From the NCBI GenBank assembly GCA_904063045.1, contig CAJFCJ010000001.1, positions 434,001 to 498,000 of the forward strand: DNA of 64,000 nucleotides, read 5' to 3'. This document shows, one piece after another, positions 30,101 through 40,997 of the stretch; the first letter of the stretch is position 1, and the number at the start of each line of letters is the position of its first letter. Source of the DNA: Dimorphilus gyrociliatus (lineage: Eukaryota > Animalia > Annelida). The notes below the pieces were generated by a model. That model was given only the letters and a program-made list of their open reading frames with translations, searched no databases and was not told the origin of the DNA. A program made the translations under genes and the position numbers.

Positions 30101-31469
30101 TTATCAATTTGCAAAGGTTCGTGTTTGGAAAGGGAAGCATTTCCCAATCATTAATACTGAATTTTGTGGATTTCCTTCCCTATTTTTCTATTTCACTTTT
30201 ATTTTTATTCAACTTCTTTGACGTCGATTGTTAAATTATACGCAATTGGGAATCATCTAATCACTTAAGTACTTGTTTATCGAGTAATTACTAGAGGGGT
30301 TTGTATCCAAGGAAAAAATGATTTGTAATACTTCAACAGCAATATAGTATGATGGTCAATTGAAAGTGTTAGTAATGCTAAGGGAAGTGGACGCAATTTT
30401 ATTACAGATGCGCAATTTACTATTTGCAGCCCCAATCTCCCTCTCTTTTTAGCTCAATCAAATACATGTTTGTCGATAAAATCGCATCCTCAACTATGCT
30501 TAATATATCCTTTCGCCCACTCTTCAGCTTTAACTCATTTTTCTTTGCCGTATCGCCCTTCACCCTTTTTAACAAGAATTCTTCCAGATGTTTATAAATA
30601 TTACGCAATGCCCGTTTATCCCTTATAAAAGTTGCTACTTAGGCTTATACAAAATTTATGAGAAATAATTCGACGGGTGGTTGAGTAGATTTTTGCTTGG
30701 CAGGAGTAGAAACTATGAGAAATAGAGTTGCTATTTTTTTTTTTGCACTTATGAAAAGTTAAAGACATTTATTACTGAAATAAACCAATCAGAATGACAA
30801 TAATGTACTACTGTTGGATTTTTAGAATAAGGATCTTAATACCAATTTGTTTTTTTATGATGAAATCATTGTTATATATTAAATATTCATTTACATGTAT
30901 TACGGTGTATATTCTATTTGAGGAAAACTTTAGAAAATAGATTATGATAATCTTAACAATAATGAAAAAGGAAAAAAGTACTTGTACTTTATTTCTTTTC
31001 ATTCCCTTTTTTTTCAATTAGAAATGCGTAAATTAGGCCAATTCCCAAAATATACAATAAAGTAGAGAATGTTGTTTTTACATCTTTTTCATTCTATACT
31101 AAACTTATCCGTTTTTCTTCAGTTTTTGTATTCTTTTAAGTTGAAAGTAGTTATTAATTTTCATATTTCCCGTATACTTTACTAAAGTTAGTCTCTTCTT
31201 CCTTCTTTCTCTCGCTCTCTCTCTCTCTCTCACACACATATATATATATATAGTATACACGCACCAATCTTCATCTACAGTCTCGGACTCCTATCTTTAT
31301 TTCTCTTATTATTCTAGTGTTTCTGGCCTTTTTAAGTATAAATAACTATTTGATATATAAAACATTCTTAAACCAATTCGTAAAAAGGCATATCTAATAT
31401 AAATGCCCTTATTTCAAGTACGGTTCCAAGCGCCATATATATAATTTGTATATATAGTTAAATTTGCGC

Positions 31470-32609
31470 ATGCGCCGGATAAACTACGGAATCGAGGCGA
31501 GAAAACATTTTTATTATTCTGATACGGAGCTTCAAGAGCTCCATGCTAATATGAACAACTCATCAAATGAGGCACACTTGGCTTCCGAAATCGCCAGATT
31601 CGCTGTACCTTTTGTTTTTCTAAACATCTTTATTGTTGGAGTAATAGGAAATGGGACTTTGGTTTTTACTGTCTTCCACAATAAGGTTCTTCATAATGCT
31701 CCAAACATACATATTGTATCTTTGGCAATTGGCGATTTACTTTTAATTGTTATCACGATACCATTTACGGCAACTATCTTCACTTTTGAAAGCTGGCCAT
31801 ATGGAGTAGTAGTCTGCAAGCTAAGCGAATATCTGCAAACTTTGTCTGTCGGCGTCTCCGTGTTCACTCTGACGGCGTTAAGCGCTGATCGTTACAACGC
31901 TATCGTCAATCCGATTAAGCATGTCAAGAAAGTGTCGCCCGTAAAATTCGCTTTAATCATTGCTTCTTTAATTTGGATCGCCTCTGCCCTTCTTGCCCTT
32001 CCAGATGCTATCTTATCATCAGTTGAGGATATGGGTGGTATCTGTATATGTAAAAAATATACTTCGACCCAGCCTAACTGGTATCCGAAAGTGAGGGTGA
32101 TAACAGATTTTACACTCTACTTCAGCGTTCCTCTCCTAGTCGTGTTCGTGTTCTATGTCCTGATGGCTAGGATGCTGACAACAAGTGCCAGGGGATTACG
32201 AGAAGGGCAAGGTTCGTCCGACAGGGTAAATAAACAAATGGATTCGAGGAAGAAAGTAGCCAAACTAGTTTTGGCTTTTGTTCTTGTCTTTGCTGTTTGT
32301 TGGCTACCAAGACACATCTATGTATTTTGGTATCAGTTCGACGAAGAGACAATGTCTGTGTTTTGGTTTTTCTTCAAGATCTCTAGTTTCTGTCTAGCAT
32401 TTATAAATTCATGCGTCAATCCAATATCGTTATATCTTTTATCCAAACAATTTAGGTCCTATTACAACCGTTATCTGTTTTGCTGTTGTAACTCTAGTGC
32501 TTATAGAAACCACGAAACATTGCAAATGAAATGTCGAACGCAAATTCGTCCAACAACAAATAGTACAACAGCGTTTAGTTTATTACAGACGACTAATGTC
32601 GATAAATGA
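31470..32609 (+). CDS. Class A neuropeptide GPCR of the bombesin/GRP-CCHamide-excitatory peptide (EP) receptor group
   Basis: Intronless 7TM ORF with GVIGNGTL, NAPNIHIVSLAIGDLL, SADRY, CWLPRH and NSCVNPISLYLLSKQFRSYYNRYLFCCC. Confidence 0.85.
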   Translation: MRRINYGIEARKHFYYSDTELQELHANMNNSSNEAHLASEIARFAVPFVFLNIFIVGVIGNGTLVFTVFHNKVLHNAPNIHIVSLAIGDLLLIVITIPFTATIFTFESWPYGVVVCKLSEYLQTLSVGVSVFTLTALSADRYNAIVNPIKHVKKVSPVKFALIIASLIWIASALLALPDAILSSVEDMGGICICKKYTSTQPNWYPKVRVITDFTLYFSVPLLVVFVFYVLMARMLTTSARGLREGQGSSDRVNKQMDSRKKVAKLVLAFVLVFAVCWLPRHIYVFWYQFDEETMSVFWFFFKISSFCLAFINSCVNPISLYLLSKQFRSYYNRYLFCCCNSSAYRNHETLQMKCRTQIRPTTNSTTAFSLLQTTNVDK

Positions 32610-35600
32610 CGACGAAAGTTGGAAAAGGTTTCACTGGAGAACGAAGAAAGAAATTTCTGTACATAAGTATTGATGTTGTGCAGTCAGCCCTTTCGAAAGT
32701 GTACGAACAGGAAATAAATATATATGTATATAAATTATATATGCTTATAAATCTTGTTTATTTACAGATGTATATACAGATATACATGTATTATATACAT
32801 ATATATATATATATAGTACATATGTATTTAAAATAAGAGCAAGTGCACAACACATGTGAACCATTCATTAAATTAATATATGCATTTATCGAACCTAATA
32901 ATTTAATTTTAGTACTTATACCTTCCTATATTTATTACTTGAAACAACCAAACTCATTCCCTCTCTTCAATTTCATATTGATCATTCCTAAGTAAATACA
33001 ATCAAAAGAATATAGGCCTAAACCTAACGGGGCTCGTGTAGGAGTTGGAACTTATTCGTTACATAGCAGACCTCTCGGTAAGAACATACAGGTAATTAGA
33101 TTGCGCCAAGTTAAAAGGATGTCTGTTGTCCTTTTAATTTCTCAGTAGGGGAGAAATTTGACTTATCCGGAACATTGTCTACTAAGAAACTGATAAAACT
33201 TATTCATATTTAACAGGAAATTGGCCTATGAATTTATAATAGACGCTCGTCTAAAATTTTTCTGGCTATATCAAATTTTTACACCACGAAAACTTGATAT
33301 GAAAGCAACTAGACGCAAGTTTTGAAGTGCACAAGTCAACCTTCCCTAAGCAGTCTTTCAGACTTGCTAATAAAGACGGTCTAGGTGAGGGAATCGGGAA
33401 AAAACCCTAAAGCTGAATGAGGCTATTTTTTGTATAATAATCTACTCGAGCAATATATTATCTAATATAAAAGTCCTTTTTTTTCAATAAAACTTTGCTC
33501 TCTTATCATTTCATAACTTAATTGCTTCTATAGAAATTAACATAATTAGATAATAAAGAAAAATTGTATATTAACTGTGCTATTTTCCACTCATAAACTA
33601 TAAAATAAAGGAATATCATTTTAGACGCCTATAAATAAATATTTGGGATGTTAACAGGAAATGGATACCATATATATATTAAATATATATATAAAATATA
33701 TATATATATATATTTATATATATAAATTAATGCCTACATAGTCTTTCCTTAAATATTTTATGCTATAAGAATTTTAATTAATAAAATATTTAAAAGAAAA
33801 TCATATCAACCAAAGGAAGCTGAAAAATACGATTCAGTTGATGGTTGGCTTATCCTTTGAGATCAATTTTTTTTATATCTGGCCTCTTACAGCTTACGAT
33901 TACTTGAAAATGAAGTTTTCGTTCCTAGTTCCTCATAATATCCTCTTCCTTTTAGAATATTACTTAAAGAAATCACAAGAACTGCTTCCTATCGCTGAGC
34001 ATACTTAAGACCATGAGAAAGAAAAAAGGTAATTTATCAAAGGAACGATATTTCCCAACAGAAAACCTTTTTCAACTAGTTCTTTACCTGAAATTAAACG
34101 AAACTATGATAATTATATCTAGCGAATTGAATTACAGGTCTATTATAATATACAATATATGTAAAAATAATTTTAAACATACCCAATTATTAGACTAAAA
34201 GAGTAATAAACGTATCTGCCAATTATTTATGTTGAGAAGAGAATCTTGTCTCTTCTAATTTATCTCTATATTTATCTCTCTAGATCTCTTAAATACTCCT
34301 TATCTCAACAACCCTTCTCTCTCTTAACGCCACCTTCTTTGCACCTATCTTCTTTTCTTCCTTTCTTTCATCTTCTCTCTCTATTCACTAGACTTGCATT
34401 ATTTTACTTAGTTATCGTTTTTATCGGAAATAAGATAAGAAGGATTATTGAGCAAATGTTGAAGACAAGGAAGAAAATCACCATCAGATACTTTTAAACT
34501 ATATAAAGATATATATACTGTATATACAGTCTATATAGTATATGCAGTATATATTAGAGTATATAATTGACCGTTTAGAATGCAAGATTAATGCGTCGGA
34601 TTGTTATAACGTCCTTTATATTTCAATCATAAATCAAATTAACCTCCTTTTCCTTAAATTTAACCTATAAATATACAAACTTTTAGACACCATCATTTAT
34701 TTATTTATTCCCTTCGGTACAGTTAGATTATTACTTATTAAGATAGTAAGTAGCCGAGAAAAAACAAAATCTCTGTTTGCCCCTGAAATAAAGTCGTGCG
34801 CAATAGGCTTAATTTCGTATTTGGCACTTTTTAATTATTAAACAAGAATAGAAATGAAAAAAGTAGTAGAAAAGAATCATTTCTTCTCTTTTCTCTGTTT
34901 AGATTTAATATATATATATATATATAAACTATATACACATTTCTTTAATCAAGATTTTATTACCTACAATAAACATTTATCTCTATTTCTACTCAACAAA
35001 AATAAAAGTAAGAGAAAAAGGAAGAAGAAGGCAATAGTTGGAATTTTCTCTTTACTGTCTTCTTTTCCTCTTCTTAAACTAATTAAAATAATTATTAAAA
35101 GTTTTTAAAATCTTCAATATAGTAAAATAGATTAATTAAACTCGTAATTATTAATTATTATCAATATTTATTAAGATTTAAGCTTCTTACTCGTTTCTTA
35201 ATGACATAATAATATACCTAGAATTAATATTACCAATAGTACTCCATCTTTATATTAAGAAATTCAAAGTTTTGACAGTTAACTATATATTTAACAAATA
35301 TTTATTGGGGAAAAACAATCTAAGCATGAATCAACAATCACTTTGAATATATATAATCTACATATATATAAATATACATATATAGTTTATATAGTATACA
35401 GTATATATATATATAGATAATTGATTGATATGTTTAGAAAGAGTACAATATACAATAAAACAGTGAATAGACGGAAGTAGATGGGGTGAGGTAAGGAGGG
35501 ATGAGAGATAAGTTTAAAGAAAAGGACAGAATATTCTCGATTCCTTTCCTCATTCAAATATTCCAAAAGTATATAATACATAATGGCTTTTCTCGATATT

Positions 35601-35676
35601 TTTCATAGGATCACTTTCAATCTACTTGCAAGGCGAGAAGTGGGAATTTCGTCAAGTATCATTCGATTCCCCCAAT

Positions 35677-35680
<4 letters not shown>

Positions 35681-35709
<29 letters not shown>
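35681..35709. repeat. (TA)n microsatellite
   Basis: TA run read directly. Confidence 0.9.
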
Positions 35710-35714
<5 letters not shown>

Positions 35715-35932
35715 TCGATAGATGGCGCCGGCGATCGTTAGCTAAAAACTTGGGCTTCATAACGTTTTGAGTAGATAATGTAGGAGTATAATAGACAGAT
35801 ATGTATCATAATAGGGGTCTACAGCGTCTAGTGTTCTCCGACTATATACTTTATACGTGAAAGAATAAATTTGTGGATTCGGTTTAGATTACCATTAGAA
35901 TATGTACGATACTTAAAAACCTCGTAAACGAA

Positions 35933-36823
35933 TCAATAGATTGTAGTTGGTATAACAGATATCCGATTGGTTGTTTTCTTATTCCAAATTTGCAAAGTTT
36001 GCCCAATAGCCCGACGGAGGGGATTATGCAAAGCCAAGTATAAAATCGGATTGATTACGGCATGGGAAAAGAAAATCAGAAGAAAAATTTGACGTATCAA
36101 GTCGGCGACTTTCTGATCACGATCGGCTATCACAAGTAATAAATAGGGTAGCCAACAGACGACGTAGACTATAGTGATGACGAACAAATTACGGGTCACG
36201 CGAAATTGCTGATGCTTCCTCTTCAAGATGATCGCTCGTCGAAAGACGATGTAGTAACTAATTAAGGTTATAGCTGTGCCTATGATGACCATTGATAGAA
36301 GAAAGACAGTGTCTGAGACATAATTCTCTTCGATTATCGCCTCCACTATGCATAATCTATAAGGTTTTTCGTTGGACGGAAAGTATCCGTTCGTATAAGC
36401 CATTGGATACAGGCCAAGTACTAGACTAGATGTCCAAGTCACAATTAGGGAGACGATAGTTCTCGTATTCGAAAAGAGTTTATCGTAAAGAAGGTTCGAG
36501 ATGTTCATCATTAAAGCTCGGTTCACTGCAATAGCGGTCAAACTAATAAAGCTTACAAACGTTAGGCAACAATTAAATAAGGCTATAAATTCACATCCAG
36601 AAACAGCTTTTGTAGTGGTCACAGAATAGGCATTAAATGGACAGGTTATCCCACACAATAGCAAATCCGAAATGGCGACTGATACCAGATAAAAGTTGCA
36701 CGTCTTCCTCATAGAACGGGTAAGTAGAATAACTGAGATTATAGCTGAATTGGTGACAAATCCAATTAGGGCTAGAAGGCTAAAAGAGAGAGAGTAAGCG
36801 ATCCTTTGTCCAAAACTAAACAT
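35933..36823 (-). CDS. Class A GPCR, melatonin-receptor/Tre1-Moody-like
   Basis: Intronless 7TM ORF (first ATG 36823) with NFYLVSVAISDLL, AIAVNRA (an NRx variant of DRY), CWLPY and HAVINPILY. Confidence 0.78.
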   Translation of the reverse strand: MFSFGQRIAYSLSFSLLALIGFVTNSAIISVILLTRSMRKTCNFYLVSVAISDLLLCGITCPFNAYSVTTTKAVSGCEFIALFNCCLTFVSFISLTAIAVNRALMMNISNLLYDKLFSNTRTIVSLIVTWTSSLVLGLYPMAYTNGYFPSNEKPYRLCIVEAIIEENYVSDTVFLLSMVIIGTAITLISYYIVFRRAIILKRKHQQFRVTRNLFVITIVYVVCWLPYLLLVIADRDQKVADLIRQIFLLIFFSHAVINPILYLALHNPLRRAIGQTLQIWNKKTTNRISVIPTTIY

Positions 36824-36991
36824 GTTTGCCAAGTTATAATAGACGTCTCTTTCTTTGCAACTGCCTCTATCTCTTTCTCTCGCCTTCTTTACTTCTCTCT
36901 TTTTCTCACATTTTTCCACTCCTTACCGTCTCTTTATACAGGCTATAAACTGTTTACGATCGTGAGAAAGATTGCAGATTTTTTTCTTTCT

Positions 36992-38107
36992 TTAAACAAT
37001 AAAAGCGCTTGCCCGACGCCCTCGAGACGATGTAGCACTGGCAGCTGCGCTAATACTTGGGAAGAAATCATATCTCGAACCTGACGGTAGCTCGGCGGAC
37101 AAATACTGACTACTACTCGTTTCAATTCGAACCTGCGGAAGTCCGCCGTCTGACGAAGGTCTTTGACCTAGGAGCAAAGGTCCACTAAATTCGTTAGGGT
37201 CGGCGAAAAATCCTCCGGCACCCTTTATCAGCGAATAGACGGCGAAAGGTGTTATCAGCGGCTGTGACCAGGCCAGTATAGATAAGAATTTGTAGACTAA
37301 CTGAGGAGCATTCACTAACGGTTCAATGGCGTACAGAGTCAACAAGGGTAGACAAGCTATGACAAAAAGTACCGTATAAGCTGATAGAACTCTTAGTTTG
37401 TAGGTCATCATCTTTACAGTGTCCCTTACATTCCTCTTGTCTACCATGACGGATTGACGGCGTTGTGAGTTGGTTCGAACCGACGGATCAATAGAAACTG
37501 TGGCCCTTACCAGAGTCGATAGTCTGTAGTAGTTGCATTTAGATATATCCTTTGCTAATTGACAAAGGAAAGCGATCGTCATAAGTATGGCCATAGCCTC
37601 TAAAAGTAGCCAAACCACGTGTAATACATAGTTATTTGTGACGCCCATAGTAAAGCGGCACTGTTCAATAGATCGTCCTCCTGGCATGAACGCTACTCCC
37701 AAATTAGTAATAATTGCGGCAAACCAGATAACAACTAGTGCAAACCAGACGCAACAGCAATTCTGTGAAGCATTTACACCCAAAGTTATATCCGAAAACG
37801 AATAGGCTTCGTTCATAACGATGGCTAAGAGATTAAACGATGCGCAAGTGACTAATACGATATAAGTACCGGCCAAAGCGCTGCAAATTGTTGGTCTGTA
37901 GACGCTAACGACAGAGAATGGAATGCAATAGGCGGATCTAATTCCATCCAAAAGACACTGGTGTAATAAAAAAGCGTTCATTGGCCTCCGTAAATTCTTC
38001 AAACAGCAGAAGGTTAGTAGTAGGAGAATGTTGGTGAGAATTCCTACTCCCGCTATACACGCTGTAAACCAACTTTCGACGGTCAACGTGGTTCCGTTGA
38101 GATGCAT
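36992..38107 (-). CDS. Divergent orphan class A GPCR, SREB (GPR27/85/173)-like in TM2
   Basis: Intronless ORF with 7 hydrophobic segments. FLLHQCLLDGIRSAYCIPF resembles SREB FLLDLCCSDILRSAICFPF as recalled. DRY is replaced by NEAY, and NPxxY by QPLITPFAVY. Confidence 0.7.
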   Translation of the reverse strand: MHLNGTTLTVESWFTACIAGVGILTNILLLLTFCCLKNLRRPMNAFLLHQCLLDGIRSAYCIPFSVVSVYRPTICSALAGTYIVLVTCASFNLLAIVMNEAYSFSDITLGVNASQNCCCVWFALVVIWFAAIITNLGVAFMPGGRSIEQCRFTMGVTNNYVLHVVWLLLEAMAILMTIAFLCQLAKDISKCNYYRLSTLVRATVSIDPSVRTNSQRRQSVMVDKRNVRDTVKMMTYKLRVLSAYTVLFVIACLPLLTLYAIEPLVNAPQLVYKFLSILAWSQPLITPFAVYSLIKGAGGFFADPNEFSGPLLLGQRPSSDGGLPQVRIETSSSQYLSAELPSGSRYDFFPSISAAASATSSRGRRASAFIV

Positions 38108-38921
38108 ACTGCAGTACTGCAACAAGGCTTAAGTACTCTTACGCTGGGTGAATACAAAAACGAGAACGTTTGAGGAATAGGCCTTATAAAAGAGAACGTC
38201 AGTTGCGACGTGACGGAGGAGCTCGATTTACGTTCAATTTCCGGTCGATGATCTTAGAATTTCTGCTACTCGATCGATGCCAGGTTGATTGGTGGCGAGT
38301 AGATTAAAAGAATTGTTATCTCTTCTTCTATTTATTTGTTTTCTACTTCTCTTATTCGCTCCACTTCTATTCCAAATATTCTTCAACCACTTCCGGTAAA
38401 AAGTTTGCCACGTCATCCGATTTCTTCTCTAGTTCACAAATGAAATTTTAAGTTATAGAAAAGCACTTTATTTATTTCAAATACAATTCTCATAAAGCGA
38501 GTTTTAGTGTACCCAGAGCTAGGCCTTATTCCAGTTTCATTTTCCTCATTCGCCCTTAAACCCTACGAATGGCACGCCATCTGATAAATCATAAGGCTCC
38601 ATCTTTCGTTCGTTTTTTTCTCGGTTTATTTTTAGCATTTCTCTATTTAATTCTGAAATCAAGACTCATGTCCAATAATGAACTATACCTTCCGCAATAA
38701 TTGACAAATAAGGCACACAAAAATTTCACAAAGGTAATATACAACATTCTCCTTTATCATAAACGAACTAAAATTATATTTTAAAAGGTCAGAATAGGCA
38801 CTTGATTAAACAAAGTAAAGAGAAATTCTTCAGTCAAACAAGAAAAAAATTAACCCTTACTGTAGCACGAAAACTTTTTTTTTTGGTAGAATAAAGTCAA
38901 TTAAGGCCTATACATTATAAC

Positions 38922-38954
<33 letters not shown>
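38922..38954. repeat. (AAT)11 microsatellite
   Basis: Perfect trinucleotide run read directly. Confidence 0.95.
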
Positions 38955-38955
<1 letters not shown>

Positions 38956-39351
38956 GTGTATGAAGAAGAAATAATAAAAAATGATTGAGAGAGAGAGACA
39001 GAAAGAGAAAAAAAACACTTCTCATAATTTACATAAATAACAGAAAAAAAACGTCAGTGTCTAATTATATATTTTTTTAAAATCACGAATGTACATACTG
39101 TATATATATATATATATTCTTTCTCTTCCCTCCCCCCTCTCTCTCTCTCTCTCTTACTGTTTTTTTATATGAATCAATAATTAATATATGTATATTGTTT
39201 TGTAACTTTTACATATGTTCAAGTGATTTATCAATTACTTTTTCCTCATATTTTTGGGTTATTAATTTCAAGTTTTTTACGCTCTATTGATTTATGTATA
39301 TATATTTATATTTATATATATCTCTATATATATACTGTATACATATATCTA

Positions 39352-39937
39352 ATGAACAATGCAACTTTATCAAAGTATACTAAAGACTTTATAAATTGTA
39401 CAAGTAGAATAATTATATTACTAGTTTTCTCTTTATTAACTTATTCACGAAGAGGTTTTTGGGAAAATATTTACAAAAATTATGAATTATTCATACAAAT
39501 ATTTATTCATTTTTCTCTTAAGCTTTAATCTTGGAAAATGTAAGGATTATTAATTTCTTCTTTGATAAATTTCAATTGATAACGTTTACTTTCATTTTTT
39601 TCTTTTAACTAACCCTATTTTAGGTTATCGTCTAGATAGTATTCTAAATTCGGAGGATCAAAGGTTAAAACATCTCATTTCATATTTTTGAATAATTTAA
39701 TTTTATATTTACAAGTATTTATTTCTTTTTTTCAGGTCACTGTCTATTAAAGATTGTAGTATATGCAGTGATAGGTGGAGAGAAATAGCTTGTATGATTT
39801 TTGGTGTTGATGTTTGCTATACCAGACCGATTCGTAGAAAATCAGTAAAGAGAGGAGTTGGACTAGAATATTGCGCACTAACTGAAGGCTGCTCTTTAGA
39901 TGATGTTCCATGTATATTGAAACACTGTAGTGCTTAA
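39352..39937 (+). CDS. Predicted secreted 8-Cys prepropeptide (about 114 aa) with insulin/relaxin-like layout
   Basis: Exons 39352-39454, 39624-39663 and 39736-39937 join in frame (phases 1,2). Intron 1 has a CTAAC branch point and ends ttttag; intron 2 ends ttttttcag. The protein has a hydrophobic signal core (IIILLVFSLLTYS) and a 4-Cys and a second 4-Cys segment separated by RRKSVKR. ATTAAA lies at 39960. Confidence 0.65.
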
Positions 39938-40106
39938 ATTTCATGTCACGCTTCCCTTTATTAAATGAATATAGTTTACTGTAAATCCATAATAGATTAT
40001 CCCTAAAGAAAGTAAATGATAGGTTTTGGTAGTGCTTTTCTCTTATGAATAGATGATTCTTAATCGGTAAATAGCTCTTTTTCACCTAAGTGTCGGGAAA
40101 ATCAAA

Positions 40107-40997
40107 TCACGGAGAAGTATTAGGAATATCAGCCATAGAGATACTATAATCAAATTGATTAACTTGCGGTACTTCCATTGGAGTAGAGAAACATATTTCC
40201 GGCTCTTGTTCGTCGTAGTTCGGGGTGGTAGGTGGAGCTCGAAGAGAAGATAGCCGCCGACTATAACAATGCTTATACATTTGCTTAGACAGAACTGCTT
40301 CAGTGGAATAATTATTTAATTGTAATCTATATCTTTGATCAACTGTCTCAGGTGTTCTTATATGTTGACTATTTAATCTCGCACAAATCAGTGATCTTTC
40401 AATATCTTCTGTTCGCAGTTTATGCGTTTCTTTCAGTTTTTTCTTCTTTTTCATCCTCTTTTCAAATTCGGCTCGTTGTCTAGCTCTTATAACTAGTAAA
40501 TCGTCAACATCCTTTTGCGATGAACGCTCTGTGGAATCTAGGTAGAAACCTTCAAATGCTTCTTTACCATCTCTTTTCGGTTCGGCGAAAATCTGCGGTA
40601 GAATTAACTTATTCGATCGCTGACCTTGAAAGGTTGAAAAGGTATCGACCGGACAAGGAATAGGCTTCCCTAGAGGACTGACCGAAAAAGACGACTCATA
40701 TCTGGGCGGTCGGCGTAATACTTGCCTGACTAATGACCAATTTTCCTTGTCCTTCTCCAAGGAATATCCATGTTTGGGATAACCCAATAATATAGAATTA
40801 TTATGATTACTGTTTATCTTCTTCTTTGAGAACTTCCTTCCTCGGATTTCTTTGGGTAGATTTCCATTAATCTTATCTTCATCTCTTAAAATTTTAGGTA
40901 GAACAAGAGGCAAAAGCTTCGGCCTTTTCATTGATTCGTCAGAAATATCATACGAGAGGTCATCCTCCGCCAAATTATTATTAATCTTTCTCGCCAT
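40107..40997 (-). CDS. Uncharacterised basic, hydrophilic protein (296 aa)
   Basis: Uninterrupted ATG-initiated 891-nt ORF with coding-like composition between AT-rich flanks; no family recognised. Confidence 0.65.
   Translation of the reverse strand: MARKINNNLAEDDLSYDISDESMKRPKLLPLVLPKILRDEDKINGNLPKEIRGRKFSKKKINSNHNNSILLGYPKHGYSLEKDKENWSLVRQVLRRPPRYESSFSVSPLGKPIPCPVDTFSTFQGQRSNKLILPQIFAEPKRDGKEAFEGFYLDSTERSSQKDVDDLLVIRARQRAEFEKRMKKKKKLKETHKLRTEDIERSLICARLNSQHIRTPETVDQRYRLQLNNYSTEAVLSKQMYKHCYSRRLSSLRAPPTTPNYDEQEPEICFSTPMEVPQVNQFDYSISMADIPNTSP

Follow-up and report, generated by a model that had tools for sequence, protein, structure and literature searches.

The genome of the annelid Dimorphilus gyrociliatus holds what looks, from its sequence, like a real and conserved pair of unannotated genes for an eight-cysteine secreted peptide without a known family. 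One copy lies at positions 39352-39937 of the 64,000-nucleotide stretch of contig C1 that was analysed (referred to as the window), and its paralog lies on contig C9. The third exon, which carries all eight cysteines, is a real coding sequence under purifying selection. For the gene as a whole we lean towards a lineage-restricted D. gyrociliatus gene, one of two old paralogs, that encodes a small secreted cysteine-rich precursor cut into two chains. The product would probably be a two-chain, four-disulfide peptide; its signal peptide, splicing, cleavage, disulfide pairing and signalling role are predicted.

Gene model of the window copy

The earlier note on this DNA had put forward a three-exon gene. 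Its three pieces, their GT and AG borders, the phases 1 and 2 and the translation quoted for them were all present as claimed, and a second candidate for the first exon was found in addition. The features of the window copy are as follows (window positions).

39352..39454, plus strand: candidate exon 1 (E1a), starting with ATG; a polar N-terminal part of 19 residues followed by the hydrophobic run IIILLVFSLLTY; phase 1
39482..39539, plus strand: alternative candidate exon 1 (E1b), 19 codons and one base, phase 1; signal-peptide-like, with MNYSYK followed by YLFIFLLSF
39624..39663, plus strand: candidate exon 2, a 40-nt pro-region entered in phase 1 and left in phase 2
39736..39937, plus strand: exon 3, the entire eight-cysteine region, 66 residues, stop codon TAA
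39836..39853, plus strand: convertase-type site R-K-S-V-K-R in the linker between the two four-cysteine halves; R is P6 and K-R is P2-P1
39960..39965, plus strand: ATTAAA, read from the sequence as a possible polyadenylation signal, 23 nt 3' of the stop codon

Both donors of this copy are weak, with T at position +3 in each. The donor of E1a is AG/GTTTTT, the weakness of which had been pointed out in the earlier note and is plain on direct reading, and that of exon 2 is AG/GTTAAA. The acceptors of exon 2 (TTTTAG/G) and exon 3 (TTTCAG/G) each have a good pyrimidine tract ahead of them, and the first AG after the tract at exon 2 is that at 39622-39623. The GC content of exon 2 is 0.35 vs. 0.15-0.20 in the flanking introns. 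In the model that starts with E1a the introns measure 169 nt and 72 nt; these lengths are compatible with the D. gyrociliatus genome, since its median intron is 66 bp, and trans-splicing is absent from it (PMC7854359).

Exon 3 consists of two halves with four cysteines each, joined by a linker, and the cysteine spacing of the second half is C-x5-C-x6-C-x4-C. The searches and structure predictions described below used exon 3 alone as the query, and the pieces of exons 1 and 2 were joined only for frame continuity in the shuffle control.

A paralog on contig C9

The six-frame comparison of the 66 residues of exon 3 with the 78-Mb, 349-contig assembly gave exactly one other match (E 4.7e-8), located on contig C9. 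A third copy was not found when the genome was searched with a profile built from both copies. Likewise, a degenerate DNA pattern for G-L-E-x-C-x-L-T-x-G-C occurred at two loci in the genome, which are the two copies, and the reversed control pattern occurred at none. The features of the paralog are listed below, where L002 is a stretch of contig C9.

C9:215962-216150, minus strand: match to exon 3 in the six-frame search of the whole genome
L002 2129-2081, minus strand: paralog exon 1, 16 codons and one base, donor GTAAGC
L002 1892-1847, minus strand: paralog exon 2, 46 nt, donor GTGAGT
L002 1699-1480, minus strand: paralog exon 3, third of three exons

The paralog model has the same three-exon layout with phases 1 and 2 as the window copy, and both of its donors agree with the consensus. 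An in-frame stop codon lies four codons upstream of the ATG of its exon 1. Intron 2 splits an arginine codon six residues before the first cysteine in both copies; this shared position is meaningful, since an AG would fall at one given site by chance with a probability of only about 0.03-0.04.

The two copies of exon 3 are 37-41% identical and all eight cysteines (8/8) are aligned. Both copies share the initial K-D-C-S, the K-R site, the motif G-L-E-x-C-x-L-T-x-G-C that follows it and a C-I close to the C-terminus, and the best-conserved stretch begins directly after K-R. At the aligned position the basic site reads R-K-S-V-K-R in the window copy and R-I-Y-P-K-R in the paralog. An extra R-R site is present in the window copy only and absent from the paralog, which ends in the basic tail K-R-K. 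The cysteine spacing in the second half of the paralog is C-x5-C-x5-C-x4-C.

Coding status of exon 3

When the two loci were aligned as DNA, exon 3 alone gave an alignment better than that of shuffled sequences (z 2.6), and no such alignment was found for the introns or the upstream and downstream sequences (z below 0). Over 65 aligned codons the proportion of synonymous differences was saturated (pS 0.79), vs. a pN of 0.43. The GC content of exon 3 is 0.36-0.37 vs. 0.15-0.26 in the introns, in both copies. The paralog lacks an equivalent of the antisense ORF at 39747-40085, and no alignment was obtained between the antisense translations. As the open frame, the eight cysteines and the motif have been kept while silent sites randomised, the peptide frame is under purifying selection.

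The upstream exons

In the shuffle control the acceptor was taken as given, and shuffling of the upstream 700 nt was done in 50-nt blocks; a shuffle was counted when it allowed a three-exon model with phases (1,2) and an ATG-started, hydrophobic first exon. Such a model was still allowed by 23% of the shuffles of the window copy and 17% of those of the paralog. The three-exon gene of the earlier note therefore stands in part: exon 3 lies far beyond chance, and the upstream exons taken alone do not. On the sequence alone, exons 1 and 2 count as candidates. A hydrophobic run is found in E1a, in E1b and in exon 1 of the paralog; about 20% of the shuffles yield a hydrophobic ATG exon by chance.

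Either E1a or E1b may be the first exon. E1a holds a single in-frame ATG, and no similarity was detected between it and exon 1 of the paralog. The donor of E1b, AAT/GTAAGG at 39540, is far nearer the consensus than that of E1a, and it would lead to the same exon 2 across an 84-nt intron. E1b encodes a hydrophobic core of nine residues after a short polar start, and in size and donor strength it resembles exon 1 of the paralog (16 codons, GTAAGC). The model with E1b turns the split codon into a ninth cysteine, which the paralog does not have. By direct reading there is no ATG from about 39355 to 39482, so that a transcript starting shortly after the TA-rich tract at 39290-39345 would have its first AUG in E1b.

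This tract ends six bases before the ATG proposed in the earlier note. Microsatellites of AAT, TA and TC units (38925-38955, 39100-39160 and 39290-39345) account for a large part of the 1.2 kb that separate the peptide gene from the neighbouring receptor gene. The paralog, too, has TA-rich repeats, within its intron 2 (L002 1760-1800).

These data bear on the reading that the window copy, or both copies, gives no spliced mRNA and is a functionless retained open frame or a decaying duplicate. The weak donors of the window copy (GTTTTT and GTTAAA) would fit it, as would the frequency of chance upstream exon models (17-23% of shuffles) and the fact that no annotation and no called protein was found anywhere. 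We give this reading a slim chance, because the open frame, the eight cysteines and the intron position have been kept in two copies while synonymous sites became saturated and the introns lost their similarity. Such retention would be unexpected otherwise, which argues for selection on the protein.

The duplicated block

The peptide gene and its paralog belong to a duplicated block of at least four genes, which covers 31464-40997 of the window on C1 and C9:214800-222700, and in which the gene order is mirrored. Its members are as follows, where L006 is also a stretch of C9.

Window 31464-32609, plus strand; C9 L006 5582-6694, minus strand: GPCR-A, 74% identity
Window 36992-38125, minus strand; C9 L006 1674-2792, plus strand: GPCR-C, 73% identity
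Window, plus strand; C9, minus strand: the peptide gene, 37-41% identity
Window 40107-40997, minus strand, 296 aa; C9 L002 344-1303, plus strand, 319 aa: ORF without a family, 31% identity, E 3e-31

In both blocks the peptide gene stands head-to-head with GPCR-C, with start codons about 1.1-1.3 kb apart, and tail-to-tail with the 296/319-aa ORF. In the window the ATG of GPCR-C is at 38107, about 1.25 kb from the peptide gene. The divergence of the peptide gene is about equal to that of the 296/319-aa ORF and far above that of the receptors. For a third GPCR in the window (35933-36919, minus strand), the ORFs of at least 100 aa in the C9 stretch that was read include no counterpart.

GPCR-C is an intronless, divergent class-A receptor, with a Pfam 7tm_1 match of E 1.4e-5 and a score of 25.2 vs. 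the 30.5-bit cut-off. Its relatives in other assemblies are 45-47% identical, and the one that is named comes from the nemertean Tubulanus polymorphus, where it is labelled 'trace amine-associated receptor 4-like'. GPCR-C appears to belong to an orphan receptor family. A 95%-identical copy of the neighbouring GPCR is carried by Logan contigs, and one of the C9 GPCRs is an exact match to the D. gyrociliatus protein CAD5118472.1 in NCBI. This match and the ILP sequences given below confirm the source species; the DNA itself is AT-rich, of invertebrate and not human type.

No Pfam family was found for the 296/319-aa pair, for which the search gave only a weak TPX2 match (E 0.15), and neither exact sequence is in the protein collection. 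The two ORFs have in common the motifs L-L-G-Y-P-x-x-x-Y-S-L-E-K and A-P-P-[TS]-T-P. A further ORF on C9 (L006 4710-5030, minus strand) contains L-L-F-R-K-W-F-E-E-A, a motif reminiscent of pyridoxamine-phosphate oxidase; the corresponding site of the window lacks such an ORF.

Search for relatives and annotation status

Neither exon 3 nor exon 1 had a Pfam match at E ≤ 1, and the paralog gave only a PSI-domain match at E 0.15, which is at chance level. The word-index protein search with exon 3 was blank. When the two-copy profile was run with HMMER against a library of 1.84 billion representative proteins, neither a relative nor a self-match came up. As the library holds the D. gyrociliatus annotation, the missing self-match means that the gene is unannotated. 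Two HMMER matches were rejected as spurious, being long tandem-repeat proteins whose scores were summed over 6-7 stretches. The ESM Atlas yielded nothing for either copy, and the PDB sequence search with the two-copy profile gave chance matches only (E ≥ 0.39). The scan of metagenome contigs produced 159 pattern matches, none of which (0) was confirmed.

A saposin-like identity was rejected, as there was no Pfam match and no saposin or NK-lysin chain was among the fold matches listed. To our knowledge, none of the cysteine spacings of eclosion hormone, CHH/ITP, macin, leech inhibitor and attractin fits that of the present peptide.

Neither copy is in the published list of D. gyrociliatus pro-neuropeptides (PMC7854359). 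Many entries of the peptide list for this species, including all five insulin-like peptides (ILPs), stand there without a gene-model identifier (PMC7854359), which indicates that the annotation often misses small peptide genes. The exact sequence of ILP1 is absent from the protein collection, and the official D. gyrociliatus gene set seems to be without ILP1.

Comparison with insulin-like peptides

The earlier note had read the gene as a strongly divergent hormone of the insulin/relaxin family, and this proposal found no support in Pfam, in the profile comparisons, in the PDB sequence search or in the fold searches. The six-frame scan of the genome with PF00049 at E ≤ 10 recovered ILP1 only, and the peptide locus was not matched. 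In hhalign the comparison with ILP1 scored a probability of 0.3%, and that with an ILP1-3 profile 0.14%. The ILP1, ILP2 and ILP3 sequences of D. gyrociliatus are identical to the precursors in the supplement of PMC7854359, and were located as follows.

L005 1498-1833, minus strand: ILP1, single uninterrupted ORF without an intron in the connecting peptide
L009 1438-1776, minus strand: ILP2, single uninterrupted ORF without an intron in the connecting peptide
L012 1435-1764, minus strand: ILP3, single uninterrupted ORF without an intron in the connecting peptide

The degenerate pattern C-E-C-C-x3-C gave three more matches in the genome (C14:878323-878346, C20:453725-453748 and C34:53074-53097), and its reversed control gave four; the three could be other insulin-like A chains or chance.

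The alignment of CSDRWREIACMIFG with the helix of the insulin B chain, which had been offered in favour of the insulin reading, places the second cysteine of the worm peptide opposite an insulin residue that is not a cysteine. The true B7-B19 spacing (x11) is instead that of the first and third cysteines, in both copies, with two more cysteines in the same half. The description of the cysteine pattern as non-canonical, 4+4 and lacking CC, was correct, and CC-x3-C-x8-C is absent from both copies. Only one K-R is conserved and R-R occurs in the window copy alone, so that an excised connecting peptide is not conserved.

The AlphaFold models of exon 3 were each based on a two-sequence alignment and are of low to middling confidence (pLDDT 69 for the window copy and 59.5 for the paralog). 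The model of the window copy has helices at residues 13-22, 43-49 and 57-63 (up to about 65); those of the paralog model span 13-21, 45-49 and 58-66. The K-R linker is the stretch of lowest confidence in both models, with pLDDT <50 at 32-40 and 38-43, respectively. The comparison of the predicted fold by Foldseek, which had been suggested as a check of the insulin reading, gave 0 matches in the PDB. In the all-against-all fold search nothing was found for the window model at Z ≥ 2. The paralog model gave generic three-helix matches up to Z 3.5 (UBA, albumin-binding domains and designed mini-proteins), and no insulin, IGF or relaxin chain was among its best 50 fold matches. This fold test is weak in both directions, given the confidence of the models and the fact that the insulins in the PDB are mostly split into two short chains.

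Some C. elegans insulins do without the A6-A11 bond, and a very divergent peptide of the insulin/relaxin superfamily with rewired disulfides was considered with this in mind. The first and third cysteines have the B7-B19 spacing of x11 in both copies and are preceded by K-D-C as in ILP2 of the worm, and the second chain would begin with G-x-G after K-R, as does the A chain of ILP2. The positions of the predicted helices correspond to those expected for the B helix and the two A helices, a cysteine directly follows the last helix, and ILP1-3 of the worm are likewise without an intron in the connecting peptide. We regard this origin as highly doubtful, given that Pfam Insulin did not match, that the hhalign values against the worm's own ILPs are those given above, that CC-x3-C-x8-C is missing, and that no insulin, IGF or relaxin chain occurred in Foldseek or among the all-against-all matches listed. 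In addition, that two out of four cysteines should lie x11 apart is weak evidence. Membership in the insulin family is not supported, and the resemblance is of the 'works like' kind, in layout only.

Predicted processing of the precursor

Prohormone convertases prefer basic residues at P1, P2 and P6. Because the basic residues of R-x3-K-R at P1, P2 and P6 fit this preference, we read the element as a convertase site. In the processing pathway that we propose, the hydrophobic first exon would bring the precursor into the ER and the secretory pathway. Exon 3 would provide two four-cysteine, mostly helical halves with a flexible linker between them, and four disulfides would form as the single chain folds. 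Cleavage by a prohormone convertase would follow at the conserved R-x3-K-R in the exposed linker, and trimming would remove basic residues, among them the K-R-K at the C-terminus of the paralog. The two chains of the released peptide, of roughly 30-38 and 27-29 residues, would stay linked by disulfides. In the window copy, the extra R-R could free a three-residue spacer. The conserved K-R could also be chance in a basic linker.

The gene could alternatively encode a secreted single-chain cysteine-rich mini-protein that is not cleaved and has a non-hormonal role (antimicrobial, pheromonal or reproductive), to which the same evidence for the reality of the gene applies. We consider this rather unlikely. 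R-x3-K-R has persisted since a duplication so old that synonymous sites are saturated, it sits in a predicted flexible linker, and the best-conserved stretch starts right after K-R, as is usual for a released peptide. Other observations point towards the mini-protein: the model of the paralog has only generic three-helix-bundle matches (Z ≤ 3.5), and neither an amidation signal nor a repeated-peptide signature is present. The gene is, moreover, fast-evolving and lineage-restricted (37-41% identity vs. 73% for the neighbouring GPCRs), which is common in defence or reproductive proteins.

The other proposal of the earlier note, that of a new neuropeptide family, is consistent with the data as far as they reach: there is a conserved family of two members with a convertase-type site and without detectable relatives. 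Its secretion, processing and neural expression are presumed.

Going further, the two copies may represent a hitherto unseen two-chain, four-disulfide hormone family that either evolved the insulin layout on its own or is related to insulin and has diverged beyond recognition, with GPCR-C as a possible receptor and the block as a duplicated ligand-receptor pair. We see this as a long shot.

Relation to known peptide systems

The predicted precursor resembles ILP1-5 of D. gyrociliatus (PMC7854359) and the molluscan-type eight-cysteine insulins in being small and secreted, with eight cysteines in total, a helical first part with C-x11-C, a linker with a basic site and a second part that begins just after K-R. 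As in ILP1-3, both parts are encoded on one exon. It differs from the ILPs and the molluscan-type insulins in that its cysteines are split 4+4 and not 3+5, in its very short linker, and in the absence of CC-x3-C-x8-C, of profile similarity and of a fold match. With convertase-processed neuropeptide precursors it would share a hydrophobic N-terminus, the conserved (R)-x-x-x-K-R and, in the paralog, a basic C-terminal tail. Unlike generic neuropeptide precursors, it has a single conserved site, no repeated peptides and no glycine amidation signal, and its product would be large and disulfide-rich rather than short and linear. Aplysia attractin, the Euplotes pheromones and saposin-like proteins are similar in their length of about 60-70 residues, their mostly helical structure, their several disulfides and their restriction to particular lineages. 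However, their cysteine spacings differ from those of the present peptide, which has no Pfam match and no fold match above Z 3.5.

Should the two genes turn out not to be expressed, they would amount to a conserved pair of small ORFs. If they are expressed, they would constitute a new peptide family without recognisable relatives, in an annelid with a neuropeptide complement that has been called canonical. This would also mean that disulfide-rich precursors that have only one cleavage site are overlooked by peptide catalogues based on homology and cleavage patterns. Since its pairing with an orphan GPCR is conserved, the peptide is a direct candidate for deorphanisation of that receptor.
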